DNA of 64,000 bases, from positions 124,001-188,000 of the forward strand of contig NIVC01001752.1 of assembly GCA_002269645.1 (NCBI GenBank). The letters run 5' to 3'. This document shows positions 5,508 to 64,000 of the stretch, in pieces. The number at the start of each line of letters is the position of its first letter. Position 1 is the first letter of the stretch. The stretch comes from Macrostomum lignano (Eukaryota). The notes beneath the pieces were generated by a model, which saw nothing but the letters and a program-made list of their open reading frames with translations, was not told the DNA's origin and ran no database searches. The position numbers and the translations under genes are program-made.

Positions 5508-6659
5508 TCAGGCTGCTCGATCTGGAGCTTGAGCCACATTAGCACGGCCGCCTGCTGCGTTCGACTCCCGATGAGACATCAAATCTGCCATCAGCTTTGA
5601 AAAGTACACACGAAATTGCGGATTTCGCCGCAAAACTATTGGAAAACTGCATGACTGGCCGATCAAAGACAGGGATCCAATGATAGCTAGAGAGTTCACC
5701 ATTGTCCGCGAGGTATCATCAGTTGGATCAGCAGAGTAACCCCGGATTGTCAGGGCCCAGTAGAGAGCGACTGTAGGAAGCTGAGCAACCAATCTCACCA
5801 TTGCCAAGAGCAGCACAACAATGGCTCCGTTTACTCCGTCGTGTCCTGGCGGCCCGGTTGCACTGCTGAGTGCATTGGCATGCCTTTCGAGGTTGTGCTT
5901 TCTTGCCCAGACAAGTCTCGTAATGAAGAACAGCAGGCCCAGATTCAGTAGCAGAACCATAACCAGAATTACAGTCGGCGGATTGCAGATTAGACTCCAG
6001 TAGAGCAAGGCAAGATTGTTGTTCGTTTCGAAGAAGCAGGCCACGATTATGCTTCCATTTGAGTTTGTAAAAGACCTTCGTTTGCCAGCTAAGATAGGCG
6101 GTATGGACAGCAAAGCCGATGCGAGCACAGCTACCAGCATTGCCCGCAAGGCGGTCTTAGGACCAAAAGTTCTGAATCGAAACGGCGCCAAGAATGACAT
6201 TGTTCTGTCAGCTACCATCATCAATAGTACCGATGCGGACATCAACGGGCAGACAGTGATGATTGCCATGTACATTTTGCAGCCCAAATATCCGTCATTC
6301 TGCATGATGTAGCCAACAGTGCCACCGCTGAGCCAGGGAAGTCCTCTGCTCAAAAAGAAGTTCACTAAGCCGAACACAGGCATGGATACAGAGTCTACAA
6401 GAGCGACACCGCCAACGTAGACATTCTGCCGATTGATGGGTCGGATTTTTACCAGCATGCCGTAGGCAACAAAGCCGTTACCAAGGAAACCAAGAAGGAT
6501 GATGAGCGGAAGCAGACAGCCGCAGGCAATACCCGCTATCTTGGCCGTGATGCAACGAATCTGCCTAACCGAGTAGCCTCCAAAGCATTCGACTAGCAGG
6601 ATGAACATGTTGTGATAGTAGATTATTCCACCCAAGGAGCTGGCCGACGTCGAATTCAT
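5508..6659 (-). CDS. Intronless class A (rhodopsin-like) GPCR, orphan/peptide-receptor-like, 383 aa
   Basis: Seven hydrophobic segments; TM1 GN (GFLGN), TM2 ALVD, TM3 CK...ADR (DRY-like) followed by P, C-terminal NPQFR. Confidence 0.9.
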   Translation of the reverse strand: MNSTSASSLGGIIYYHNMFILLVECFGGYSVRQIRCITAKIAGIACGCLLPLIILLGFLGNGFVAYGMLVKIRPINRQNVYVGGVALVDSVSMPVFGLVNFFLSRGLPWLSGGTVGYIMQNDGYLGCKMYMAIITVCPLMSASVLLMMVADRTMSFLAPFRFRTFGPKTALRAMLVAVLASALLSIPPILAGKRRSFTNSNGSIIVACFFETNNNLALLYWSLICNPPTVILVMVLLLNLGLLFFITRLVWARKHNLERHANALSSATGPPGHDGVNGAIVVLLLAMVRLVAQLPTVALYWALTIRGYSADPTDDTSRTMVNSLAIIGSLSLIGQSCSFPIVLRRNPQFRVYFSKLMADLMSHRESNAAGGRANVAQAPDRAA

Positions 6660-11856: not shown

Positions 11857-12591
11857 TCAGTCCCAGCGGCAGTTCATGAAGCGTATCGGCGGGTGCCTGG
11901 CTCGCTCAGATCGGCGGGGCGCTGCTGTTCTTGCCGGAGGCTCCGCCGCCGGTGCCGCCGGTGCCGCCGTGCCGGCTCCGGTCGTTGGCGCCGAGTCCAC
12001 CAGTGGGTCGAACCGCTCTCTCGGCTGCGCCGGGTGCGGCGTTCGGATCAGCCGCTGCTGGTTCCATCTGGTGCCGTCGCTGAGCTCGACCGCGTGGTGT
12101 CCCGCCTGACGGAGCACTTGTAGTGGCCGTGAGAGGCGGGTACCCAGCTTGCCCTTCTTGGTGGGCCGTCGGATTCTCACCCAATCGCCGGGGTGGAACG
12201 TCTCGGGGCGGGCCCTTCGTCTGGCATCGGTGTAGGCCTTGATCCGCTGCTGCCGCGCCTCGATTTGCTGCCGCAGTGCCTGAGGCGTCGCCTCGGTCAT
12301 TGTCATTCCCCCTCCGGGAGACAGCATGGTGATCGCGGTGCGCCACTTCCGACCCAGCATGAGCTCGGCCGGTGACTTGCCCGTCAGGCTGTGCTTGGAG
12401 CTCCGGTAGGCAGACAAGAAGTTGGTCACGGCGTCTTGAAACGGCCTGTTCTCCACCATGGCCGCTCTGATGCTGGCGAGTAGCGACCGATTGAGACGCT
12501 CCGTCTGGCCGTTGGTCTGCGGATGGTAGAGGCTGGTCTTGACGTGCCGGATGCCCTGCTCGGCCAGGAAGTCCGAGAACTCGCTCGATGA
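11857..12591 (-). pseudogene. Integrase C-terminal remnant
   Basis: Frame reads SSSEFSDFLAEQGIRHVKTSLYHPQTNGQTERLNRSL...YRSSKHSLTGKSPAELMLGR; the HHCC motif and first catalytic Asp residues are missing. Confidence 0.9.
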
Positions 12592-13969
12592 TGCCGTCCT
12601 TCTCTATCTTGTCGAGTTCGGCACCGACCTGCTCCTGTCGCATGAGGGGCAGGCGGCGGAGTGGCTGCTGGACGGGTCGCGCTGCTGGGTCGACCTTGGG
12701 CTGGTGTACAGCGCCGGCGCAGCATCCTATCGCACCGCTGAAGGTCGTTGGGTACCGCGCCTGCAAGTCCGCCGTCAAGTCGCTGACCTCCGCGATTCCG
12801 GGCGGCTGCCCGCTAAGGTCGACTCGGAAGCCCAGCTTCTCCATCAGGTCTCTACCGACGATGTTGTCGCCGCCTGGCGCAACGAAGAACCGGTGCTGCA
12901 TCGCCTTGTCGCCGTAGCGCACCTCCAGCTCGGTGACACCACTTAGCTGGATCAGCAGTCCACCGTAGGCACGCAGCTTCGTCGTGGTGGGAGAGGTGAC
13001 TGCACCTGAGATCCGGTCGGCGGTCTGTCGGGACAGCAGCGACACCCTTGCGCCGCAGTCCACCATCAGGCTGACAGCGGTCCTGTCCGGTCCGAGTTCC
13101 AGCGTCGCCCGGACCTCCCTGTCGCCACCCGGCACTGCGTAGACTGTGATCACCTCGTCCGCGGCATTGACAGCAGCCTTCTGGCTTCGACAGCAACTCC
13201 GGAAGTGGTTCTTCTTGCCACAAGCGTCGCATGTCTTGCCCTTGGCCGGACAGGGGGTCGTCGGTCCGTGGTCTCGCCCACAGCGTGTGCAGGCGCCGCC
13301 GGGTTTGGCTGTCCTGCCAGCTGGTGCTGGGCGGTGCCTCCCCTTTGCAGCGACCTTCTGGCCCCTCGGCTGTCGGATCGATTGGACGGCTGCCGTGCTC
13401 GAGGTTGATGGCGCCATCGCCTTGGCTTCTTTGGAGGCTTCCTCGATGGAGACCGCGATGCTGAGTGCTTTCGCCAGGTTGAGGTCCTCCACCTTCTCCG
13501 TCAGCAGCCTCTCTCGGATTCTGGGGTTACTGGTCTTCTCAGCCAGCTGGTCTCTGATGAGATCGTCCTGTATCGCGCCGTAGTTGCACAGCTCCGTCAG
13601 CTCCCTCAGGGCTGCCACGAAGGTCTTGACGTCCTCGCCGGGTAGCTGCTGGCGCTGGCGGAAGCGATATCTGGCTACCATCACGTTGGGCTTCTCGCCG
13701 AAGATCTTCTCGAGCTCCGCCTTAGTTGCTGCGAACGTGTCGTTCTCCTTGATTGCTTGGCGTGCTCGAGCAACCCGCTGACCTTCAAATCCAAGCAGAT
13801 GGAGCAGAAGGCTCCTCTTCAGCGGTTTCGCCTCTTCCTTCCCTTCGGGCTCCTTGAATTGGGCCGCCTCGTAATAAAATTCAAAGGCCTCAATCCATCG
13901 GCTCCATGGTACTGTCGGTGATCCGCAGTTCGCCAGGAAGGGCGTGGGTGCAGGGATGCTAGCCGCCAT
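12592..13969 (-). CDS. Gag plus aspartic protease plus first residues of RT (ORF then runs out of frame to 11906)
   Basis: ATG at 13969 inside the PBS; two Cys/His knuckles CTRCGRDH..CPAKGKTCDACGKKNH; protease VDCGA; RT start PVQQPLRRLP...GIIERV. Confidence 0.9.
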
Positions 13970-13981
13970 CCTCGTCGCCAA
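13967..13981 (-). promoter_or_regulatory. Primer-binding site complementary to the tRNA-Ser(GCT) 3' end
   Basis: TGGCGACGAGGATGG immediately follows the 5' LTR; matches the tRNA-Ser(GCT) end ...CCATCCTCGTCGCCA as recalled. Confidence 0.75.
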
Positions 13982-15488: not shown

Positions 15489-16550
15489 ATGCAGACTTTG
15501 TCAATTCTGCCGCTGATTCTCTGCTGCTGCATCGCTTTCGGCCACTCGCTAAGCACTGAATTCGGCCTGTTAGGCTGCTTTGTGGACACCGCAACTCGAG
15601 ATGTCAACGGTCTGGATGGCTGGTCCACCATCGGGCCCTACTCGGTGACGTGGAGCTCCGGGGGGACCGTCACACTCAGCAGCATGACTGTGCAGCTTTG
15701 CAGCGAAATCTGCGCCTATGGAAAATTCCGCTACTTTGGCGTTCAGTTTTCAAGTTATTGTTTCTGCGGAAACTCATATGGCCGACACGGCAAGGCAGCT
15801 GACAGCCACTGCAACATGGCGTGCGCTGGCAACTCCGCCCAAATCTGTGGAGGGGCTGATCGAAACTCCGTGTACCGGCAGATCTACTATCGTCAAGGTG
15901 AGCGTAGCGGAATCTACAATCGGCACTGTTCTAATTCAAAATGTACATGCACTTCTCCCATTGCACTGGGCATAGCATCCATGGTTTAACACGCATTTAG
16001 ACACAAATAAATCAATATTTTCCGGAGAGCTGCGGGCGCCCTGGTGAAACATCGTCCCACAACAAAGGTTTAGCTCGTAGTCCATTTTCAGCCCGTTCCG
16101 CTGAGTCCTGAGCTCGTACAAGAGCACTTATACTGTATGCAGGCACGCACACATGACACACGCTCACTCAGGGCGCACAGCATGCCAACTTTTTGAAAAA
16201 CAATATAACCTATGAATGCAGGTTTGGCATGTGATCAACAGACGTCGACATGTCGAACGAAGCACTCGTGTTGGTCTCACCAGAGTAGCGACGCACTCGA
16301 TATCTCTTTTGTCATTCCAGAAGGCGAATACTTCACTTTGGTTGACCGAGACTACGTGAACGTGACCTCTACCAGCGGGCCCTTCTACCGCACCGAGCAG
16401 CCCGTCAGGAGTCTAGTTGAGTGCGTGTATCGCTGCGAAGCTGACTGCCAGGCCGTGCTGTTCCACCTCGACGCCTGCCACCTGCTGAGATTCCCCGTTC
16501 TGCCGCACGAGCTGAAGACCGTGGCTGGGAAGTTCGCCATCCGTGTGTGA
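15489..16550 (+). CDS. Secreted WSC-domain protein with a C-terminal PAN/apple-like module; exons 15489-15897 and 16321-16550
   Basis: Signal peptide; WSC pattern LGCFVD...MTVQLC..IC..GKFRYFGVQFSSYCFCGN...CNMACAGN..QICGG; phase-1 donor G|gtgagc and acceptor ctcttttgtcattccag|; exon 2 has SLVECVYRCEADCQAV...C. Confidence 0.85.
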
Positions 16551-29850: not shown

Positions 29851-30214
29851 AATGCTCTTATTGTGATAAATATTCATTGAAATTATTATTGTTTAGGATT
29901 GCATAAACATTGCAATAAATTTTACAATTTTAATACTAATATAGTATATCATTTTTAGTAGGTAACAGGTGGTTTATCGGTAGTCTCTGAAGGCCTCTCA
30001 CGCCAACTACCTTACACGCCTGCTACCCCTCTGCCACGACAGACAGAAGCTTCGAAGAACTGAGACAAGTCCTTTTCTTATGTTTGAGCTCAAACTCTAC
30101 TAAACTCGGCAGTGAAGAGCCTCGGCTCTTTCAATTGCATTGTATTTATAATGCTCGGCATTGTGCTCGGGGGCAGTGTTGGGGTGGTGGCGTGATATTT
30201 TTCGTTAGATACTG

Positions 30215-30715
30215 GTGTCACCTGTTAGATACTGATGTCACCTGTTAGATACTGATGTCACCTGTTAGATACTGATGTCACCTGTTAGATACTGATGTCA
30301 CCTGTTAGATACTGATGTCACCTGTTAGATACTGATGTCACCTGTTAGATACTGATGTCACCTGTTAGATACCCATGTCACCTGTTAGATACTGATGTCA
30401 CCTGTTACATACTGATGTCACCTGTTAGATACTGATGTCACCTGTTAGATACCCATGTCACCTGTTAGATACTGGTGTCACCTGTTAGATACTGATGTCA
30501 CCTGTTAGATACTGATGTCACCTGTTAGATACTGGTGTCACCTGTTAGATACTGGTGTCACCTGTTAGATACTGGTGTCACCTGTTAGATACTGATGTCA
30601 CCTGTTAGATACTGGTGTCACCTGTTAGATACTGATGTCACCTGTTAGATACTGGTGTCACCTTTTAGATACTGATGTCACCTGTTACATACTGATGTCA
30701 CCTGTTAAATACTGA
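30215..30715. repeat. 20-bp minisatellite (GTCACCTGTTAGATACTGAT)n
   Basis: About 25 units. Confidence 0.97.
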
Positions 30716-31329
30716 TGTAAAGTGTCGCTGGCAAACCCAACCGACCATTCTCCATCCGTTTCGAGTTCAGCAACAGAAAATCCTCAGTTATAAGCATTTT
30801 TCTGCAAAATATTTGCCATACAATTGCAAACTGAATTGAAAATCGTCAGAGAGCTCCGCTTGGTTTCCAGGCCTCAGCCCTGCCCTCCCTCCCCTCTCCA
30901 TCTCTCTCCCCTCGTGTCTCAGCTTCCGCCCCTTCACCCCTGCCCACTGGCAATGCACTTGCTATGCCGAGCACGCAGCCACAGTCAGCTCTCATTGTTT
31001 AACTCAGCAGAGCTCGCAGCATCTCACTGCTCCTGCATCTCTCACCCCGCTGAGCAGAGCAGCTGCCGGGCCCCCTGGCACCCAATGAGGCCTCAAACTC
31101 AGCCGCTGGGTCAGAGAAGAGAATCGGCCTCAGTCCATTTAAACAAATTTCTCTGCACAGGGAGAGCTCAGAGATTTCAGTCCGTGACAGCCGGACTTTT
31201 GCTGCTGCTGCTGAGCTGGCAGGCAAATTCGCTTGAAGAAGAGCAAAGCACTCAGTTTGAAGCCGTGTGGAACAGCTGCGGCAGACAGCAGATCGGCAGA
31301 CAAGCGCTGCTAGGAGAAGCAGTGTAGCC

Positions 31330-34300
31330 ATGGCTACAGAGATGGAGCGGAAGCTGAGAGCGGCGCTGGAGGCTGGAGACAGCGAGGAGCTGCAGCGACT
31401 GTGCGGTGAGGTCGGCAGCAACATCGAGCTGGAGGTGGGCGGCTTCGACAAGCAAGACTTTCCCTTTGAAGAGCTTTGCAAAATTCCGCTGGCCCATCAC
31501 GTGGCCTGCAAGCCGGTGAGCTCGTCGTGCCTGGAGCTGCTGATTGACAGATTCGGACCCGACTGTCTGACATATGGAAATGGTAGGCTTATTCGTGAGA
31601 CTCCAGTGCACTTGGCTGCCCAGCATCAGGACGAATCTTGGATGAAGCTGGTTAAAGAGAAGGGAGGCAGAGGCTGCTTGAGAATTGCCAATGAAGATGG
31701 AAAGACAGTCGCTCACTTTGCCGCTATGAACAGAAAAAGCAACTCTTGTCTGAAGTGGCTGGTGAAGGAGCTCGGCAGCGACTGTCTCACAGTTCCTGAC
31801 AAATACGGTAACACGGCCGTCCATTTGGCCGCTCAGCATCAGAGCATCGAGTCGCTGGAGTGGATCAAGAGACAGATCGGAACTGACTGCTTTCGGCTGA
31901 AGGGATTGTTGGATAGAACAGCATTTCACTTTGCTGCTAAGAAGTCTGACAATTCAAATCTGAAGTGGCTGGTGAAGGAGCTCGGCAGCGACTGTCTCAC
32001 AGTTCCTGACTCTAGAGGTGACACGGCCGTCCATTTGGCCGCTCAGCATCAGAGCATCGAGTCGCTGGAGTGGATCAAGAGACAGATCGGAACTGACTGC
32101 TTTCGGCTGAAGGGATTGTGGGATAGAACAGCATTTCACTTTGCTGCTAAGAAGTCTGACAATTCAAATCTGAAGTGGCTGGTGAAGGAGCTCGGCAGTG
32201 ACTGTCTCACAGTTCCTGACAAATACGGTGACACGGCCGTCCATTTGGCCGCTCAGCATCAGGGCATCGAGTCGCTGGAGTGGATCAAGAGACAGATCGG
32301 AACTGACTGCTTTCGGCTGAAGGGAGATTATGATAGCACAGCATTTCACTTTGCTGCTCGGAAGTCTGACAATTCAAATCTGAAGTGGCTGGTGAAGGAG
32401 CTCGGCAGCGACTGTCTCACAGTTCCTGACGAATACGGTCACACGGCCGTCCATTTGGCCGCTCAGCATCAGGGCATCGAGTCGCTGGAGTGGATCAAGA
32501 GACAGATCGGAACTGACTGCTTTCGGCTGAAGGGATTGTGGGATAGAACAGCATTTCACTTTGCTGCTGAGAAGTCTGACAATTCAAATCTGAAGTGGCT
32601 GGTGAAGGAGCTCGGCAGCGACTGTCTCACAGTTCCTGACAGATCCGGTACCACGGCCGTCCATTTGGCCGCTGAGCATCAGGGCATCGAGTCGCTGGAG
32701 TGGATCAAGAGACAGATCGGAACTGACTGCTTTCAGCTGAAGGGAGATGATGATAGAACAGCATTTCACTTTGCTGCTGAGAAGTTTGACAATTCAAATC
32801 TGAAGTGGCTGGTGAAGGAGCTCGGCAGCGACTGTCTCACAGTTCCTGACAAAGACGGTGACACGGCCGTCCATTTGGCCGCTCAGCATCAGCCAGTCGA
32901 CTCTCTTCAGTTCATTTTTGACCAAATCGGAGCCGAAATGTTCAGCTTGAAGAACAACAGGGGCGAAACACCGGCTGATGTTGTTGAGAGTTGGCGGTGC
33001 GAAACAGACGAGTCAGCAAAGCGGGCCTGGATTTCCTCCACGCAGCGGTGGCTCGAAGCCTCTCGGCCTCCCGCTGGCAGCTCAGCGCCGACTGCCGCCT
33101 CAGCTGGGTGAGTCCTGACTGAGAGCTGCTGCCTGACACTGAAAATACTGAAAATATTGTTTGGCGAAAATTCATTGCGCTTTGATGATCGGCGCCCTGA
33201 AATTCTCAGCAGCGCCGCAGTCAAGCGAGGGCGTCATGAATCTGTCAGTGCAGCTCCTCATGGCGCCTCCAACTCTCCATGGCGCCTCCAATCTCCTCAT
33301 GGCGCCTCCAACCTCCCCATGGCGCCTCCAACCTCCCCATGGCGCCTCCAACCTCCCCATGGCGCCTCCCAACCTCCCCATGGCGCCCCCAACCTCCCCA
33401 TGGCGCCTCCAACCTCCCCATGGCGCCCTCAACCTCCCCATGGCGCCTCCCAACCTCCCCATGGCGCCCCCAACCTCTCCATGGCGCCTCCAACCTCCCC
33501 ATGGCGCCCTCAACCTCCCCATGGCGCCTCCAACCTCCCCATGGCGCCCCCAACCTCCCCAGGGCGCCTCCAAACTCCTCATGGCGTCTCAAATCTCCCC
33601 ATGGCGCCTCCAATCTCCCCATGGCGCCCCCAACCTCCCCATGGCGCCCCCAACCTCCCCATGGCGCCTCCCAACCTCCCCATGGCGCCCCCAACCTCCC
33701 CATGGCGCCTCCAACCTCCCCATGGCGCCCTCAACCTCCCCATGGCGCCTCCAACCTCCCCATGGCGCCCCCAACCTCCCCAGGGCGCCTCCAAACTCCT
33801 CATGGCGTCTCAAATCTCCCCATGGCGCCTCCAATCTCCCCATGGCGCCTCCAACCTCCCCATGGCGCCCCCAACCGCCCACCCACATCTCAATCTGCAG
33901 TTTTTAAACACAAAGCATCAGCGAGTTCAAGTGCCATCAAACTCTTCGAAGTTTCAAACTCTCCGATTTTAGTAGGAATGTACTTGGTGTGATGTTGAAA
34001 ATATTGGCACTTGAATGATTTGAGAGCCTCCAATCTCTTCGTGGCGCCGCAATCTCCCGATCGCGCCCCCAATGTCCATACAGCGCCACCCAAAGCTCAA
34101 TCTGCAGGGGCTTCTTATTTACCAGAGGGTATGTACATGTACAAGATTTACTTCGACAAGCCTCTGGCACTGGCGTGAGTTCATTCAGCCCACACAGCTA
34201 CAGCACACAGCTACAGCACACAGCTACAGCACACAGCTACAGCACACAGCTACAGCACACACAGCTACAGCACATACAGCTGCAGCACACAGCCACAGCA

Positions 34301-36317
34301 CACACAGCTACAGCACACAGCTACAGCACACACAGCTACAGCACACACAGCTACAGCACACACAGCTACAGCACACACAGCTACAGCACACACAGCTGCA
34401 GCATACAGCTACAGCACACACAGCTACAGCACACAGCTACAGCACACACAGCTACAGCACACAGCTGCAGCACACACAGCTACAGCACACACAGCTACAG
34501 CACACAGCTACAGCACACAGCTACAGCACACACAGCTACAGCACACACAGCTACAGCACACACAGCTACAGCACACAGCTGCAGCACACACAGCTACAGC
34601 ACACAGCTACAGCACACAGCTACAGCACACAGCTACAGCACACAGCTACAGCACACACAGCTACAGCACACAGCTACAGCGCACAGCCACAGCACACAGC
34701 TACAGCACACACAGCTACAGCACACACAGCTACAGCACACACAGCTACAGCACACACAGCTACAGCACACACAGCTACAGCACACACAGCTACAGCACAC
34801 ACAGCTACAGCACACACAGCTACAGCACACAGCTACAGCACACAGCTACAGCACACAGCTACAGCGCACAGCCACAGCACACAGCTACAGCACACACAGC
34901 TACAGCGCACAGCCACAGCACACAGCTACAGCACACACAGCTACAGCACACAGCTACAGCACACAGCTACAGCACACACAGCTACAGCACACAACTACAG
35001 CACACAACTACAGCACACACAGCTACAGCACACACAGCTACAGCACACACAGCTACAGCACACAGCTAGAGCACACAGCTACAGCACACACAGCTACAGC
35101 ACACACAGCTACAGCACACAGCTGCAGCACACACAGCTAGAGATCACAGCTACAGCACACAGCTGCAGCACACAGCTACAGCACACACAGCTACAGCACA
35201 CAGCTGCAGCAGGCACAGCTAGTGATCACAGCTACAGCACACAGCTGCAGCACACAGCCACAGCACACAGCTACAGCACACAGCTACAGCACACAGCTAC
35301 AGCGCACAGCCACAGCACACAGCTACAGCACACACAGCTACAGCATGCAAATTATCCTCGTTGCTTCAATTCTCATCCACTCAGACCCGAAGGCCCCCCG
35401 TTCCTGGAACGCTGGGACACTATTCGCCTCATCGGCCGCGGCGGCTTCGGCGAAGTCCACGAAGTTCGAACTGACACGGGCGTCACGTGCGCTGCCAAGA
35501 CTCTCAGACTGCCTGTGCAGCTCGGTGATGAGCTGCCCTCTGTGAGCACAGAGATCCACAAAGCTGTCGAGAGCGAGAGAAACCTGTGCCGACTGCGACA
35601 TCCCAACATCGTCAGGTTCTTGCACATCGCTCAGCCGGAGCCCGCAACAGTCGTTGTGTTCATGGAGCTGCTGGACGGCCGGAGCTTGGAGAGGTTTATC
35701 GACAAGCCGCTGGACGAGCTGACGATTCGAGACTTCAGTGAGCAGGTGAGCATTGTGCATCCTTGATGCTCCTGTTCCATGTTCCCATGAATGATGACTG
35801 CTCACTGACCGACCGCTCGCAGATCTGCCGCGCGCTGCTCTACCTGCACAGACGGCAGCCGCCCGTGATCCACAGAGACATCAACTGCTCGAACATAATT
35901 GTTTGTGCTGACAACACGCGAATCAAGCTGATCGACTTCGGCCTGTCAATCAAGCTGGAGCAGTCAGTCAGCCACATGTCAGCCTCCACTCAGGCACCCA
36001 AAGGCACTCTGAACTTCATGGCGCCAGAGCTACTCGGAGCAGGAGAGTCGGACAGCGTGCAGTACAGCAGAGAGTCGGACATCTGGGCGTTCGGCTGCTC
36101 GGTCTTCCAGATGGCCTCCGGCGCGAGGCCCTTCAGAGGCAACCAAAGCGTCTATCAGGTCGCCTTGAAAATTGCAAACAGTGGCGCCCCAGCCCTGCCG
36201 GACGGCCGGTCCGCAGAGCTGAGGGATTTCTACAGCCGCTGCACCGCCAAGGACCGCAGGCAGAGAAAAGCCGCACGGGAGTTGCTTGAGCACGAGTTCC
36301 TGAGGAAAAACCTCTGA
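31330..36317 (+). CDS. Ankyrin-repeat Ser/Thr protein kinase (STE11/MEKK-like), 3 exons: 31330-33107, 35385-35745, 35823-36317; ~877 aa
   Basis: Phases match (GG|gtgagt ... ctcag|A CCC; CAG|gtgagc ... gcag|ATC), total 2634 nt; exon 1 has ~13-14 ANK repeats; kinase motifs GRGGFG, AAK, HRDIN, DFG, GTLNFMAPE, DIWAFG. Confidence 0.9.
31741..32890 (+). repeat. Coding tandem array of 210-bp units (two 35-aa ankyrin repeats each), ~5.5 units
   Basis: Units start at 31741, 31951, 32161, 32371, 32581 and 32791; identical apart from a few codons. Confidence 0.97.
33240..33880. repeat. ~20-bp minisatellite (CAACCTCCCCATGGCGCCTC)n in intron 1 of the ANK-kinase
   Basis: Tandem units; source of the PPHGA/MAPP ORFs. 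Confidence 0.95.
34190..35345. repeat. 12/14-bp minisatellite (CACAGCTACAGCA[CA])n in intron 1 of the ANK-kinase
   Basis: Tandem units ending ~40 bp before the exon 2 acceptor. Confidence 0.97.
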
Positions 36318-36829
36318 CTCTCAGTGCTGTCTCAACACTGTCGGGAGATTTTGGAGCTTTATGTTGGGCGTAAATCGAATGAGAACAAAATTTCTTTTTC
36401 TAAAATTAGCCTACACTTCAATCCTTTTAAACTCTTCCTTATTTTATCTCCATGGTGCTTTAATTGCTATGAAAGCATGTTCCTTTTTAGAGCGTAGCTG
36501 GCCATTCGAAAAGCTGAGAAACTGCAAATTTCTCGAGTAGACAGTGAGAAGACAAAAGAGGAGGGCACCAACCAGCACCCAACACTCACACAGCAACAAA
36601 GCAACCGAAATCATTTCCATTCTTCATCACAGCTCATGATCTCCATTCTCCATCAGATGCATCGAGTTTGTCATATCGGTAATTTATCAAAGCTACTCCA
36701 GCCTGAACGTGAGCTGTCACTTGGACTGCATGGATATTAGGCCACATGGGCATTACTTGTGCTCAATCCGATTTGCTAGCATGGGCACCGGCAGGGCTTC
36801 TGATGGAGCTCTAATTTTTCTCCATTGGA

Positions 36830-37260
36830 ATTGATGGAGAATGGAGAAGCTGAGCTGGGATCTGATGGAGAATAGAGAAGCTGAGCTGCGATCTGATGGA
36901 GAATAGAGAAGCTGAGCTGGGATCTGATGAAGAATAGAGAAACTGAGCTGGGATCTGATGGAGAATAGAGAGCTGAGCTGGGATCTGATGGAGAATAGAG
37001 AAGCTGAGCTGGGATCTGATGGAGAATAGAGAAGCTGAGCTGGGATCTGATGGAGAATAGAGAAACTGAGCTGGGATCTGATGGAGAATTTAGAAGCTGA
37101 GCTGGGATCTGATGGAGAATAGAGAAGCTGAGCTGCGATCTGATGGAGAATAGAGAAGCTGAGCTGGGATCTGATGGAGAATAGAGAAGCTGAGCTGGGA
37201 TCTGATGGAGAATTTAGAAGCTGAGCAGGGATCTGATGGAGAATAGAGAAGCTGAGCAGT
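36830..37260. repeat. 31-bp minisatellite (GAGAATAGAGAAGCTGAGCTGGGATCTGATG)n
   Basis: About 14 units. Confidence 0.95.
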
Positions 37261-39242
37261 CGAGTTGACAAATCTCAGCAGTGAAATGCTGAAGTGACGG
37301 TCACCGAGTGCAAAACGCAGTAAAAACGACAGGCAGCCACAGTGCACAGATAAACTGTGGAATTCAACATCAAAATATGTGAGTCCCGCACTGTCCTGGG
37401 CAGGCACCGAGCTGATGGCTGATGGAATCTGAGCTGGAAATGGTCTAAGAATGAGAGATAGTGAAATAGGATGATCTGACAAGAATTATTTCTGTTTAGC
37501 AGAGCAGAAGGCGGTCAGTGCGGAGACACAATGGGCTGCTCAGAGCCTCTGCAGTGAGGAGGCTGTCAGCTCTGCGAGTAAGTGATGCAGAATGAGGTGT
37601 CAGCCCCTAGCAGGAATTTGAATTTTTTTATTAGCCTAGACTTCTCACCGGTTTCAGAGATGTACTTCTAAACATTTTTTCTACATTCTCTGTTCGAACA
37701 CCAGCCGGTCCCAGTCCCAGACCCGCCCTATAAAATGTGTTTCATTTACCTGCCACATTCTGTCTACATGACACAAATTCGCAATCACACTGGCCTCCAA
37801 AGGCCCAATTATGAGTGCCAGACTCGCATCTGAAAACTCGCAGGCAGCGAATTTTACAGTCATTGAGCACAGGCGCAATGCAAAGCTGTGAATGGTTTGA
37901 GCGGGGCAGGGTTAGCGCTCAAGCAGTTTGTCTCTGTGCCACCAACCCCCAGCCCAAAGCCTTTGAGTCCTCTTTTAACACGCGTTCGCATGCCGCTGTC
38001 TCGGCCCTCAAACCTCAGCTTCGCCATTGTCCTCTGGGCATTGAGCTTGGCTGGTCTGGAGCTGCTTGGACAGCTGGGGTCGGGGTGAGTACAGGCCTCA
38101 TTCTTTTCGCTTCGATGTGCTCACAGCCCCAACCCCAGCCCTCAACTCATGGCTGAGCGCCTCAGAGGAAGGAGAGACAGGAGGAGATGCAGAGGCCGCA
38201 CACAGCAGCCCAGCTGCACACAGCGGTGCCTCATCAGCTCTGCCCCATTGTCCAAAACCCCTGCACAAACCTCACCAGCTGTGCACCTGCCTCTACTTGC
38301 CGAATGAGCTCAGCATCTCTGCTGCATCAGTTTGAGCTCTGACAGATGAAGAGCGAATGGAGGCTGGGAGAGGCAGGGAGTGGCTGCGAATTTGCTGACG
38401 CAGCTGCTAAGGACAGGTGGGGCGAGCGGAGCGCAGAGAACCTCGAACTGAGCGGCCCAGCAACTGAGCTGAGTGAGAAATTCTTAGTGACTTGCAGCTG
38501 CTTAAGCCTTCTGCAAGGGAAGGAGATGGAGAAGGGGGTGGGTGAGAGGGAGATAGGGGAGAGGAAGATGGGTGAGAGGGAGATAGGGGAGAGGAAGATG
38601 GGTGAGAAGGATATATGTGAGAAACACAATACACACAAACACAAAGTTTTGTTTACCCGATTGACCTTTTTGTTTAGCTTATTTGTTTTCTATTCGATTG
38701 CTCTTCTTGTTGTCTAATTACATCTTTTGTTTATTCAACTGCGTGTTTTGTTTATTTGACTGCCTTGTTTGTTTAACTGATTAGATTTCGAATTTTGAAT
38801 TATCGTTTTGTCTATCGATCACCTGCTGCTACCCGATGCCCGGATCAGTTATCCAATCACGGTTTCGCTTATTCGGCTGCGATTCGGAATTCAAATTTTA
38901 TTTATTTGACTGCCGGGTTTGTTTTACCGGTTGCTCCTTTCAATTAATGAGACATTTTTGTGCTCACTCGAGTGCCATTTCAGTTTCAAGCTGATCAATG
39001 TTGATTTTGAAACTCTGGCACAAAGCCAATCACAATTTCCCCAATCTGCTCAGACTGCTCAATACCTACTCCAGATTTTCTGTTGCCAAGAATTTTTCAC
39101 ATTTTTCAGCCACCGGTTTGGCGCTTTTTCTGACACTGATTTTTGTATTTGATTTTTGGACTGACTTTTTATTAGCAACTGTTGGAGCAGGAAGTCCAGC
39201 GCTTACTCAAGAGTTCTCAGTTAAATATAAAGCCACCGCTTG

Positions 39243-39416
39243 GCTTGCCGTGACCCGCTGTGTCCTGACTTGCCGTGACCCGCTGTGTCCTGACTTGCCG
39301 TGACCCGCTGTGTCCTGACTTGCCGTGACCCGCTGTGTCCTGACTTGCCGTGACCCGCTGTGTCCTGACTTGCCGTGACCCGCTGTGTCCTGACTTGCCG
39401 TGACCCGCTGTGTCCC
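39243..39416. repeat. 25-bp minisatellite (TGACTTGCCGTGACCCGCTGTGTCC)n
   Basis: About 7 perfect units. Confidence 0.95.
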
Positions 39417-40094
39417 ATTTCATATTTCAATATTTCGCAGCTTCATTTCTGAGCCTCACTCAGTGCAATCCACACAACAGTGCGGGGAGGGCAGAGCTGA
39501 TGAAGCAGGCATGCAGTGAAGCTGGCCATTGTTTTCAAAGGGCTTGCAGAGTGTCTTGAGGTCTGAGGCTGCCTCACGGCTTGGCCCCTAACGCAGTGAG
39601 CAAAGAGATGTGCAGAGTTCTTAACTGCACAGACGCTGCAGAGCTTCTCCAGTTGCCATGGCGATGGGGGAGACTTCAGCTCAGAGAGAGTCTGTGGACA
39701 GCTGAGCAATGTGCTCACCCGGAGGCTGGGTGGTGCGGCTTGTTGCTTCATCTGCACAAAAGTGAGTTCAAACGAGCATCAGCCATTCTGTGCATCTCTT
39801 TTGAACAGCTGATGCTGCATCAATGATGCTGGCAGACACTTGAGTCTGTGCTCACTCAGTGCACTGTGAAATGTACATAAATAAGTGTTTGCAGTGGCTT
39901 CGCATTGCATTGAACTGAGACAATGGCGGGGCATGAGGGGCTGCTCAGCCACCTCAGCGGGGGCCGCTGTTTTGAGCAGGAAAATGAGAATAGAACCGCA
40001 TTTCTGCTTTCATTTTTTACCGAATTCGGTGGGAAAACACTTTTGAGACTACTCTAGATAGCAGAGTATGGTTTTAAACTGAATGCACACTTTT

Positions 40095-40815
40095 GCTGTT
40101 AGACATGGTGGTGTCCTGTTAGACATGGGAGTCTTTTGTTAGACATGGGAGTCTCCTGTTAGACATGGGAGTCTCCTGTTAGACATGGGAGCCTCCTGTT
40201 AGACATGGGAGCTTCCTGTTAGACATGGTGTCCTGTTAGACATGGGAGTCTCCTGTTAGACATGGGAGCCTCCTGTTGGACATGGGAGTCTCCTGTTAGA
40301 CATGGGAGTCCCCTGTTAGACATGGGAGTCTCCTGTTAGACATGGGAGTCTCCTGCTAGACATGGGAGTCTCCTGTTAGACATGGGAGTCTCCTGTTAGA
40401 CATGGGAGTCTCCTGTTAGACATGAGAGTCTCCTGTTAGACATGAGAGTCTCCTGTTAGACATGGGAGTCTCCTGTTAGACATGGGAGTCTCCTGTTAGA
40501 CATGAGAGCCTCCTGTTAGACATGGTGTCCTGTTGGACATGGGAGTCTCCTGTTAGACATGGGAGTCCCCTGTTAGACATGGGAGTCTCCTGTTAGACAT
40601 GGGAGTCTCCTGCTAGACATGGGAGTCTCCTGTTAGACATGGGAGTCTCCTGTTAGACATGGGAGTCTCCTGTTAGACATGAGAGTCTCCTGTTAGACAT
40701 GAGAGTCTCCTGTTAGACATGGGAGTCTCCTGTTAGACATGGGAGTCTCCTGTTAGACATGGGAGTCTCCTGTTAGACATGGGAGTCTCCTGTTAGACAT
40801 GAGAGTCTCCTGTTT
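40095..40815. repeat. 20-bp minisatellite (GTCTCCTGTTAGACATGGGA)n
   Basis: About 35 units; shares the CCTGTTAGA core with the 30215 array. Confidence 0.97.
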
Positions 40816-41243
40816 GATATGACAGTCTTCTTTACTCTTCTCTCTCACTCTCCTCTCTCCTTCCTACCCTCTCCATATCCAGCAAAGTTATCGAAATTTT
40901 CTAGTGGGAGAATGATTAATTCATGCATTTGTCATGTCGCTTTGTCCCCATCTTTGTGAGATTCTGGTGAATCTCGGGTGAGATTCTGGTGATGGTAAGA
41001 TCAAGGGAAAGGGCATAAAATAGGAGGTACAAGGGGGTTCGTAGGTTTCATGCTATTGTTAATTTTGATCGATGAATTCATGTACTGTTTATGACCGATT
41101 CTTCATAGCTACCCTACATGTGCGAGTTATGATCATGATTGTCTATGATCTACATGTACTGAGTATGACCGCAATCGCCTATGACTATACTATGACCGTA
41201 ATTGTCCATGACCTAAATTAATGCCAAAGACTTATAATCCATT

Positions 41244-41595
41244 ATGGAGGCCACAGTTGGTGAACTCTTCAACACCTGCAGCCTGAGCGCAGGCAACCAG
41301 CCAAAAGGCACCTGGCACTTCATAGCCGCGGAGATGATCATGGGCGAGGGCGATTCGATTCCGTACTCAGCCAAGACCGACGTGTGGGCCTTTGACTGCA
41401 CCGTGTATGAGCTGACGGCCATGCAGCCTCAGGATCACCGTGCTGAGGTGCGGAGGGCGGGCGATGCCTCGGATTGCGGACGGGTTCTCAGCCGACATGA
41501 AGGATTTCTACCTCAGGTGCGTAGACTATGACCCGAGGAAGCGAGCGGACACCGCGGAGCTGCTGCGGCACAGCTTCCTGAGTGCCTCATCGTGA
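41244..41595 (+). pseudogene. Protein-kinase C-lobe relic, paralogous to ANK-kinase exon 3
   Basis: PKGTWHFIAAE...YSAKTDVWAFDCTVYEL, then a frameshift to MKDFYLRCVDYDPRKRADTAELLRHSFL*; N-lobe and catalytic loop absent. Confidence 0.8.
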
Positions 41596-62920: not shown

Positions 62921-63808
62921 ATGGTAAACCACCAGGCGGATGCATCAGTCGACAGAATCAGGGAAGTCAGACGAAGACTTGTCCAGGACCTACTCAATGG
63001 CATTGAGCCTGATCCCAGAGCGTTAGACCCTACAGCGGATATTGAAGACAACCGTCAATTCAGCTCGCCAATTCTGCAAAAGCTGTACACCACGGTGGAG
63101 CAATTCGGTGCTAGGAGCACCATACACGGTTTGCAGCACATCTTCCATTCCAGGGAGCTGACTCGCCGGATATTCTGGCTGGTTCTGATGCTGGTCGCAT
63201 TGTGTCTGGGCCTGGCGCACATGCACGCTACTGCGATGGAATTTCTAAGCAATCCACTGACTTCCCAGCTGAAACTAATGAGCGAGCAGGTGAAATTTCC
63301 AGACATCACTTTGTGCAACTTGAAGCCAGCCTCCGAGTCGATGTCTCTGGCTCCGGAGTTTCGCCAGTACATCCGCGATAAATGGGGCTACTTCGACAAT
63401 TGGTATGTCGAAGAGAGGAAACGAAGAGGGAACGAGAGCAAAGTGAACTTTTATGAACGAGCGCGGCTTGTGTTCGGCCGGCTGTTCCAGATCCTGTGGG
63501 TCTCTGGTGACTCGCGCGATATCGGAGTCCTGGACGTCACCCTTCTTCTGGATTGCTCCTACAACAGCATGAAATGTCACCAAAAGAACTTCAGTCTGAG
63601 GCAGAATTATCGCTTTTGGAATTGTTACACGTTCTTCGTGCACAAGGACAACTTGGTCACGGGAAAGGGCGGCAAGGGGGCCGAACTTGACTTGGTGCTG
63701 TTCACTGACAACCACAACACCGTACGACTCGAGGATTTGGACGGCAGCGCTAGGCAGAAAAATCTCAGCACTGGAATCTATAAGAGAAGTCGGCAGACGG
63801 AAGAGCAG
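62921..63808 (+). CDS. DEG/ENaC (amiloride-sensitive Na+ channel family), first coding exon; the gene probably continues past the window
   Basis: FGARSTIHG (HG motif), RRIFW TM1, KFPDITLCN, DCSY...C, NCYTF; probable donor CAG|gttaat at 63808. Confidence 0.92.
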
Positions 63809-64000
63809 GTTAATTTTATTAATTTATTTAACCTCAGAGGTGCTACTTTCCTTTAGGGAGGCAACAAAGAGGGAATAAATTTAGAAATAAAGATACTCCA
63901 TATGAAAAGGGCCTTGAGCCAGTGCATCTCTGAAACCAATCCTTAAGCCATGGCTTAACTATAGAGCCTTAAACTAGCTCTTCCATTGATTCTTTGCATG

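Follow-up and report, generated by a model that had tools for sequence, protein, structure and literature searches.

A gene for a predicted ankyrin-kinase protein is present in a 64,000-nucleotide stretch of the Macrostomum lignano genome (GenBank assembly GCA_002269645.1, contig NIVC01001752.1, positions 124,001 to 188,000 of the forward strand), referred to here as the window. The gene contains a tandem array of near-identical double ankyrin repeats, in which replacement differences are concentrated at the few positions predicted to contact a ligand. The explanation that we consider probable is that concerted evolution, together with positive diversifying selection on the ankyrin binding face, has shaped a module wired to a kinase or a caspase, and that the gene belongs to a conflict-driven recognition family. 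An earlier sequence-only reading had described the locus as a variable ankyrin receptor kinase, and its claims are considered below with the results that bear on them.

The predicted product is a protein of 877 amino acids, in which an ankyrin solenoid is followed by a linker and a C-terminal kinase (Table 1). The first ATG, at 31330, has a good context (gccATGg), and the paralogue proteins begin at the same MATEMERKL. Exon 1 was identified as ankyrin by Pfam (Ank_2, E = 8.8e-49, seven stretches), as the sequence-only reading had it, and the AlphaFold model gives each repeat a pair of helices (pLDDT >90); among the PDB sequence matches of this part are NOMPC, Espin, TRPA1 and designed ankyrin repeat proteins (DARPins). 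The acceptor ctcag/A at 35384/35385 restores the frame, with the terminal GG of exon 1 and the A of exon 2 forming a glycine codon. The closest paralogue protein, P0002 (BOX15_Mlig029208g1), has the same ankyrin-kinase junction (...TAASAG/PSDPPFLERWD), and the M. lignano annotation, including P0002, was built from RNA-seq and transcript assemblies (PMC5730564). As the P0002 model is RNA-seq-based, the ankyrin-kinase splice has transcript support in a paralogue, not yet in this copy, and the splice phases previously proposed to join the ankyrin exon to a kinase fit.

No signal peptide and no transmembrane or hydrophobic segment was found in the 877-residue protein (maximum Kyte-Doolittle value over 19 residues of 1.16). 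The protein is predicted to be cytosolic, in agreement with the intracellular location proposed earlier. One paralogue protein (P0012) has an extension, MGNTRSVAK, ahead of the common start that resembles an N-myristoylation signal, which hints that some family members could be anchored to membranes.

The array was detected by Tandem Repeats Finder (TRF) at 31749–32892 with a period of 210 bp, 5.4 copies and 94% matches. Each unit of 210 bp (70 codons) encodes two 35-residue ankyrin repeats, A and B, and the array sits within an open frame on the plus strand (31267–33111) that is intact throughout. In-frame translation from 31741 reproduced exactly the repeat strings of the sequence-only reading. 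Repeat A reads LTVPD-[KY/SR/KY/EY/RS/KD]-G-[N/D/D/H/T/D]-TAVHLAA-[Q/E]HQ and repeat B reads FRLKG-[LL/LW/DY/LW/DD]-D-[R/S]-TAFHFAA-[K/K/R/E/E]-K, with LWDR present in both unit 2 and unit 4, followed downstream by K versus E. The pairwise identity of the five full units was 91.0–97.6% (mean 94.3%), and the nucleotide difference between units fell to 1.0% when the hot codons were excluded. These hot codons are the eight unit codons 21, 22, 24, 32, 56, 57, 59 and 67 (24 nt), which contain 18 of the 22 variable nucleotide columns (hypergeometric P = 4e-17 versus a uniform spread) and correspond to ankyrin positions 2, 3, 5 and 13 in both repeats. The clustering at a few codons noted earlier was thus confirmed, but the list was incomplete, as isolated single replacements are also present at unit codons 35 (S/G), 52 (R/Q) and 69 (S/F), and at codon 3 of the unit 1 edge (C versus N). 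Similarly, the one synonymous difference reported earlier (AGC/AGT) is the only one inside the array, but two more (AAC/AAT and TCT/TCA) are found at the edge of unit 1 (31741–31746).

Searches of proteins and assemblies place the gene in a large, young multigene family that is found almost only in M. lignano. A protein search returned approximately 55 ankyrin-kinase proteins at E < 1e-40, all from M. lignano; beyond this species, the matches fall to ~30–35% identity over the kinase part alone. The search with the ankyrin part again matched M. lignano in nearly all cases, and a HMMER search with the kinase domain returned many further clusters. The sampled matches of at least 38% identity whose source was looked up were all from M. 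lignano except two (37–40%), namely P0208 and a short metagenomic protein. P0208 (Logan SRR28338163 and SRR28338164; L010/L011), the one clear relative from beyond M. lignano, has 877 amino acids, ankyrin repeats with a K2-like kinase, and 40% identity. Its ankyrin repeats are ordinary, divergent and non-homogenised, which suggests, from this sequence, that the ankyrin-kinase architecture predates the homogenised hypervariable arrays.

Two kinase types were distinguished within the family: K1, the type of the window gene, and K2, the type of most genes that have the window array type. A caspase domain (Peptidase_C14) follows the ankyrin array in P0046 and the kinase in P0045 and P0222. The window gene has no caspase and ends in the kinase and a stop codon. 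Six paralogous loci were taken from the same assembly, giving, with the window, seven loci and 36 complete DNA units; the nucleotide identity of the window to L001–L006 was 93–97%. No exact match to the window ankyrin open reading frame (ORF) was found in public assemblies or the public gene collection.

Codon analysis of the 36 units showed the signature of diversifying selection that had been proposed from the window alone. Non-synonymous diversity (piN) was 0.40 at the hot codons (0.27–0.68 at the seven hottest) with a synonymous diversity (piS) of 0.18, while the scaffold had a piN of 0.023 and a piS of 0.033. The minimum number of non-synonymous changes per codon, counted on a spanning tree, was 5.9 at hot codons versus 0.57 in the scaffold, and the non-synonymous to synonymous counts were 41:5 and 34:16, respectively (Fisher P = 0.014). 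The hot columns of the family alignment are 18, 19, 21 and 29 in repeat A and 53–57 and 65 in repeat B; column 71 is also hot. Ranked by variability, the first seven codons are all among the eight codons of positions 2, 3, 5 and 13 (P = 7e-9). At hot codons 21 and 29 of this alignment, the third base is invariant in 36 of 36 units and the first base has four states; the third position of codon 65 varies once. The invariant third positions of codons 21 and 29 are as selection at the amino-acid level would predict and argue against a local mutational hot spot, an interpretation that was rejected.

The signal extends beyond the array. In the single-copy terminal ankyrin repeats, too, the hot sites occupy these structural positions, with a whole-region ratio of non-synonymous to synonymous divergence (omega) of 1.2 on the N-terminal and 2.4 on the C-terminal side. 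Among the paralogues, the 215 nt before the ATG (31115–31329) are 96.7–98.6% identical and the adjoining 420 coding nt (31330–31749) are 92.2–97.1% identical, such that the coding sequence diverges faster than its flank. The hot-site piN (0.40–0.68) exceeds every synonymous or flanking divergence of these loci by a factor of 4–12, and relaxed constraint cannot, on that account, explain the hot-site diversity. A second array type, with the scaffold LKWLVNECGTDCLSVRDQ-x-G-x-TPVHLAA..., replicated the pattern: nine hot codons had a piN of 0.41, and the remainder a piS of 0.024 and a piN of 0.005. Near-identical units of this second type are present in the kinase-linked L007/P0016 and the caspase-linked L008/P0046. 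The counting methods therefore identified positive selection at predicted ligand-contact sites in both array types.

An AlphaFold model of the spliced protein, built on a 29-sequence family alignment, had a mean predicted local distance difference test (pLDDT) score of 83. The solenoid was continuous, with most residues above 90, and the kinase was well folded. Linker residues 580–595 were disordered in the model (pLDDT <50), and the relative orientation of the domains was undefined (predicted template modelling score, pTM, of 0.53). Within unit 1, residues K158, Y159 and N161 of repeat A lie in the loop before helix 1 (163–170), with Q169 at the helix end; in repeat B, L193 and L194 occupy the loop that leads into helix 1 (198–202), and K204 directly follows this helix. 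Positions 2, 3, 5 and 13 form the finger-tip and inner-helix binding groove in ankyrin complexes and in DARPin design. The alignment to DARPin NI3C (PDB 2qyj) pairs TAFHFAAKK with TPLHLAARE, which fixes the numbering and identifies the hot sites as these four positions, in line with the earlier suggestion that the variable residues are those randomised in DARPin libraries. The hot-site residues are mostly D, Q, K, E, L, R, S, Y and W, a palette typical of interfaces.

Two acidic repeat-B loops, GDYDS and GDDDR (residues 333–341 and 463–473; window 32326–32352 and 32716–32748), had pLDDT values <50, and the hydrophobic variants GLLD and GLWD were modelled confidently. The loop variants may thus differ in order as well as in chemistry, as judged from the model.

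The arrays are internally conserved and vary in repeat number across the paralogues. The scaffold distance was 0.021 within arrays (p-distance range of 0.010–0.035) and 0.027 between arrays, with no obvious positional orthology of units among arrays, and the scaffold piS (0.033) was about one-third of the kinase piS (0.08–0.13). The number of units per array ranged from 3 to 13 among paralogous loci, and L004 contains a recently duplicated multi-unit block. The 36 units comprise 21 A-patches and 25 B-patches in 34 distinct combinations, and a given patch is nearly always spelled with the same codons, from which it follows that patches were inherited and recombined, not reinvented. The pattern in these sequences indicates concerted evolution, in which units turn over through unequal crossing-over and gene conversion, both inside a locus and from one locus to another. 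The homogenised scaffold and the mosaic shuffling that the sequence-only reading had described in the window are therefore found across units and paralogues alike. Some genomic arrays are longer than the annotated proteins, with 13 units in L004 (3415–6360) versus four to five in P0010, and five in L002 versus four in P0001; most likely, the annotated coding sequences skip units through the short-read collapse of repeats in transcripts, with repeat-skipping or somatic change as less likely causes.

The recognition and output modules have different relatives. By blastn, positions 30204–34118 of the window (the promoter region, the ankyrin exon and the first part of intron 1) match K2-type loci, as does the distal 3′ flank at 38647–41034. 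The end of intron 1 and both kinase exons (34738–36328) match L009, with further L009-matching blocks at 36833–37257, 37469–37573 and 37739–38366. L009, the locus of P0028, is of the K1 type, and its ankyrin domain differs from that of the window gene. On the basis of these matches, the window gene is a recombinant whose kinase cassette comes from another subfamily (K1). The left breakpoint of this swap maps to 34118–34738, within the 13/28-bp CACAGCTACAG satellite of intron 1, and the intronic satellites may be recombination substrates for module exchange. Because K2-type sequence surrounds a K1 cassette on its 5′ and 3′ sides, the swapping of recognition and output modules occurs in the DNA itself.

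Exons 2 and 3 cover positions 3–107 and 105–263 of the PF00069 profile, a full-length kinase match. PDB comparisons considered the best 60 of 116 sequence matches and the top 50 fold matches (Foldseek). The top sequence match was MAP3K5/ASK1 (E = 1.5e-27), with 25–29% identity to the best solved relatives, and MAP3K2, TNIK, WNK1/3, SLK, MAP2K5/7 and PAK1 trailed it by at most about four orders of magnitude in E. The fold ranking was headed by TNIK, WNK3, MST3, MEK1, MAP4K4 and ASK1 (TM-score to the target of 0.63–0.83). Judged from these matches, the kinase is STE-group-like with no single group clearly closest. The earlier assignment to MAP3K-like kinases is reasonable but too specific: ASK1 is the top sequence match, but STE20-type kinases, WNK and MAP2K are nearly equal. 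Unlike ASK1, the window protein has none of the ASK1 regulatory domains and carries a different catalytic loop.

This loop reads HRDINCSN (35868–35891), with Asn instead of the usual Lys of the canonical HRDxKxxN. The GRGGFG, AAK, alpha-C Glu, HRD, DFG and APE motifs are kept, so the catalytic set is partial, and the kinase that the sequence-only reading had called complete is full-length as a domain but has its catalytic-loop Lys replaced. HRDINCSN was present in all three K1-type genes compared (window, L001 and L009), and the K2-type loop is HRDIKSSN. The kinases overall are constrained (omega 0.40–0.57): the same three K1 genes have a proportion of synonymous differences (pS) of 0.08–0.13 and an omega of ~0.5, and the K2 kinase has an omega of 0.40. 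The alpha-G region (36126–36185) reads RPFRGNQSVYQVALKIANSG in the window, RPFANAKSMLGMAQLIDRRG in L001 and RPFANAKSLLEMAQLIDRRG in L009, and the second kinase of P0014 has the alpha-G patch of the window-like version. On this evidence the kinase domain, too, is a mosaic of two patch variants.

The mechanism that would account for these results involves two opposing processes. The 70-codon scaffold would be kept nearly uniform by unequal crossing-over and gene conversion, acting inside arrays as well as from one paralogue to another, which would also change the number of units and reshuffle them. Diversifying selection would drive apart the residues at the hairpin-loop tip and the end of the inner helix (positions 2, 3, 5 and 13), such that each paralogue would present its own binding surface on a common scaffold. 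Recombination in satellite-rich introns would join these recognition modules to one of two kinase types, a caspase, or a kinase and a caspase. The concave face of each protein would then bind its own fast-evolving protein ligand, and binding would control or target the kinase, being converted to phosphorylation or, in sister genes, to proteolysis or cell death. The arena would be one of biotic conflict, possibly innate immunity, defence against parasites or mobile elements, or self/non-self recognition.

A more specific form of this proposal, to which we give only tentative credence, is that M. lignano has an NLR-independent germline repertoire (NLR, NOD-like receptor; NOD, nucleotide-binding oligomerization domain) of shuffled ankyrin modules, in which the variable residues set specificity and the kinase and caspase outputs are interchangeable. 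By analogy, such a repertoire may be the animal counterpart of fungal NLRs with high-conservation repeats and of plant receptor repertoires, serving immunity, anti-mobile-element defence or allorecognition.

Several points weigh against a conflict-driven recognition family. The selection statistics are pairwise or parsimony counts on recombining sequences and not a likelihood site model. The scaffold piN/piS ratio is 0.70, and purifying selection is not clearly visible at this shallow depth. That the hot sites lie on one face would follow from the secondary structure of the model and canonical ankyrin geometry. The evidence for active homogenisation, as opposed to the mere youth of the family, is moderate, as the scaffold divergence (2.7%) resembles that of the 5′ flank (1.4–3.3%). 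On the output side, a K1 kinase that lacks the canonical Lys may be a weak or atypical enzyme or a pseudokinase. The family has no NOD, death-fold or TIR domain that would link it to known immune machinery. The paralogue gene identifiers were not found in papers or, for expression, in the supplements of three papers.

The same binding-surface logic could apply in an endogenous arena, with the arrays recognising fast-evolving self proteins of reproduction or sexual conflict, or recruiting substrates in the germline or stem cells; we regard this as rather unlikely. The selection signature is silent on the identity of the partner, and the family proteins have no canonical immune domains, both of which are consistent with such a role. 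M. lignano is also an outcrossing hermaphrodite, and reproduction-related genes in Macrostomum have been reported to evolve rapidly. However, sister genes fuse the same arrays to caspases, which are better suited to cell death than to reproductive signalling.

It is also conceivable, although improbable, that the diversity of the hot codons arises from a directed mechanism, either templated patch conversion with divergent family members as donors, or mutagenesis or recombination that is targeted or somatic, as in lamprey variable lymphocyte receptors (VLRs) or chicken immunoglobulin genes. The invariant third positions of codons 21 and 29, and the single change at codon 65, point instead to selection, and many of the variants are single-step neighbours. 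The multi-nucleotide differences on a near-identical background, and the recurrence of the same patches across paralogues with the same codons, are as a directed mechanism would have them. Transcript-derived models with fewer units than the genome (P0010 versus L004) would also fit somatic recombination, but these are most simply explained by short-read repeat collapse, and the germline arrays are complete and in frame.

Very improbable is a neutral by-product, whereby a repeat-prone genome duplicated a coding segment whose loop residues are unconstrained, in a family that is perhaps decaying. The window contains more than 20 minisatellite arrays in 64 kb, the M. lignano genome is 15% tandem repeat (PMC5730564), the scaffold piN/piS is high and a kinase pseudogene fragment lies nearby, all in keeping with this account; it is largely refuted by a hot-codon piN that far exceeds piS, and the intact frames of seven of seven ankyrin exons examined, the constrained kinases and the recurrence of the pattern in the second array type also argue against it. 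Finally, a mis-assembly or long-read consensus error in the array or its copy number is unlikely in the extreme, as judged from the sequences: arrays of 210-bp units that are 94% identical pose difficulties for assembly and the exact ORF is absent from the public gene collection, but the frame is unbroken, the differences are codon-structured and not of the indel type, and the six paralogous arrays in GCA_002269645.1 carry the same units and patches.

For the conflict-driven recognition family that we favour, the closest analogue is the group of fungal NLRs with highly conserved repeats, a comparison by analogy and not one of membership. Fungal NLRs with highly conserved WD, tetratricopeptide (TPR) and ankyrin repeats show concerted evolution and repeat-number polymorphism; in Podospora ankyrin repeats, five positions are positively selected and map to the concave face, and a kinase is among the fungal effector domains (2014, PMC4986451). 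The likeness lies in near-identical repeats of variable number, selection confined to a few positions of the concave binding face, on the inner helix and beta-hairpin, the exchange of repeats among paralogues, and the combinatorial assortment of recognition and effector domains. The window gene differs in that it has no NACHT or NB-ARC domain, its N-terminal array is fused directly to the output by a linker and the domain order is reversed; its host is an animal, its unit is a 70-residue double ankyrin, and mutagenesis by repeat-induced point mutation (RIP) is inapplicable. No NACHT or NB-ARC (NOD) Pfam match was found in the window protein or in 15 relatives scanned, and the AlphaFold model leaves no room for a NOD between the solenoid and the kinase.

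DARPins such as NI3C share the constant consensus scaffold, and the variable positions 2, 3, 5 and 13 are among those randomised in the libraries. The window array is natural and enzyme-fused, has repeats of 35 and not 33 residues, and varies in the length of its repeat-B loop; positions 14 and 33 are constant in its array type, but the last repeat and the second array type do vary at position 14. Lamprey VLRs likewise owe their repertoire to shuffled repeat modules, but have a leucine-rich repeat (LRR) fold and are assembled somatically, whereas the arrays of the window family are complete and in frame in the germline. Transcription activator-like (TAL) effectors similarly have near-identical tandem repeats with specificity in a few repeat-variable residues, but their fold is different and their ligand is DNA, of which each repeat binds one base.

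Ankyrin repeats and a kinase on one polypeptide are also found in ILK, TNNI3K, RIPK4 and ANKK1. ILK and TNNI3K have the same domain order as the window gene, unlike RIPK4 and ANKK1, in which the ankyrin repeats are C-terminal. All four are conserved and single-copy, with repeats that are few, divergent and not hypervariable, and none was present among the best 60 of 116 sequence matches or the top 50 fold matches of the kinase. Membership in these groups was rejected on the kinase type, as judged from these listed matches, and on the evolutionary pattern.

A survey of caspases noted ankyrin caspases in platyhelminths and, in M. lignano, a caspase whose pro-domain is a kinase; it did not analyse the repeats, and described neither repeat homogenisation, hypervariable sites nor an expansion of ankyrin-kinases (PMC11463336). 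These ankyrin caspases belong to the same superfamily, as P0046 and P0222/P0045 share an array or kinase type with the ankyrin-kinases, and differ from the window gene, which has no caspase. Literature searches on M. lignano ankyrin proteins, hypervariable ankyrin repeats and invertebrate ankyrin-kinase expansions retrieved no prior description, nor did they retrieve an animal ankyrin family evolving in this manner or a NOD-less family with a variable array fused to a kinase or caspase. For flatworms, this is in line with the sequence-only reading.

The concerted evolution and diversifying selection of repeats are a hallmark of non-self recognition in fungi (HET/NLR), plants (NLRs and receptor kinases) and jawless vertebrates (VLRs). 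Should the family prove to be a recognition repertoire, it would represent a natural DARPin-like library that evolved independently in a flatworm, and a tractable system for following the origin of new specificities through repeat shuffling and exon-level module swapping, given the RNA interference and transgenesis available in M. lignano. It would also be a candidate sensor layer for innate immunity and cell-death signalling in platyhelminths, which have no death effector domain (DED) caspases or FADD (PMC11463336). The natural variants are ankyrin surfaces pre-filtered by evolution, and are of interest to protein engineers.

Table 1. Coordinates of the ankyrin-kinase gene, its repeat array and other features of the window.
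Feature	Position	Strand	Basis or remark
Exon 1: start codon, whole solenoid (~14 ankyrin repeats), start of linker	31330..33107	+	Ends GG/gtgagt, phase 2; Pfam Ank_2
Hot patch in single-copy ankyrin repeat 1 (YGNGRLIRE, precedes TPVHLAA)	31573..31599	+	Per-codon piN, seven loci; hypervariable among paralogues, including indels
Hot patch in single-copy ankyrin repeat 2 (ANEDGK, precedes TVAHFAA)	31687..31704	+	Per-codon piN, seven loci; hypervariable among paralogues
Tandem array, five full units and a partial sixth	31741..32892	+	TRF, unit-by-unit codon table
Unit 1 repeat A hot codons (positions 2, 3, 5, 13)	31801-31806, 31810-31812, 31834-31836	+	Later units: +210 each
Unit 1 repeat B hot codons (positions 2, 3, 5, 13)	31906-31911, 31915-31917, 31939-31941	+	Later units: +210 each
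Last ankyrin repeat and C-terminal cap (hot patches NNRGE, VESWRCETDE), then Pro/Ser/Ala-rich linker	32893..33107	+	Region omega 2.4
Intron 1, gtgagt...ctcag	33108..35384	+	Contains minisatellites 33254-33880 (20-mer) and 34191-35345 (13/28-mer)
Exon 2: kinase N-lobe, GRGGFG glycine loop, AAK lysine, alpha-C Glu	35385..35745	+	Pfam, splice phase
Intron 2, 77 nt, gtgagc...cgcag, phase 0	35746..35822	+	Splits kinase
Exon 3: kinase C-lobe, HRDINCSN, DFG, APE	35823..36317	+	TGA stop at 36315-36317
3′ flank travelling with the K1 cassette, homologous to the P0028 locus (L009)	36833..38366	.	blastn
3′ flank common to K2-type paralogues, with 25-mer array 39241-39415 and 20-mer array 40096-40814	38647..41034	.	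blastn, TRF
Frameshifted last-exon remnant of a K2-type kinase, APE to AAE	41262..41592	+	tblastn; 60-88% identical to P0001 K2
20-bp minisatellite GTTAGATACTGATGTCACCT, 25.8 copies, ~600 bp before the start codon	30204..30718	.	TRF, blastn
Rhodopsin-type G-protein-coupled receptor (GPCR) ORF	5508-6659	-
Gag/aspartyl-protease-like ORF	11906-13981	-
WSC-domain ORF	15489-15989	+
Amiloride-sensitive (ASC) channel exon	62921-63856	+

The K2-type remnant downstream of the gene was considered as an alternative 3′ exon and rejected, because of its frameshift and because the order of its flanks does not fit such an exon. From its sequence, it is a pseudogene fragment of another family copy, outside the transcript. 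A transposon-borne origin of the gene was also rejected: the duplicated unit has no transposon hallmarks, and the neighbouring ORFs are a GPCR, a WSC domain, an ASC channel and one gag/protease-like fragment, which is 17 kb away. The neighbouring GPCR showed only 40% identity to M. lignano proteins.

The minisatellite arrays detected by TRF over window positions 1–64000 have periods of 4–42 bp. The one upstream of the gene is in the same place in three of six paralogous loci (L001, L003 and L006; it is not in L002 or L005). Each of its units includes TGATGTCA, one mismatch from a CRE/ATF (cAMP response element/activating transcription factor) site, and the minisatellite might be a regulatory array.

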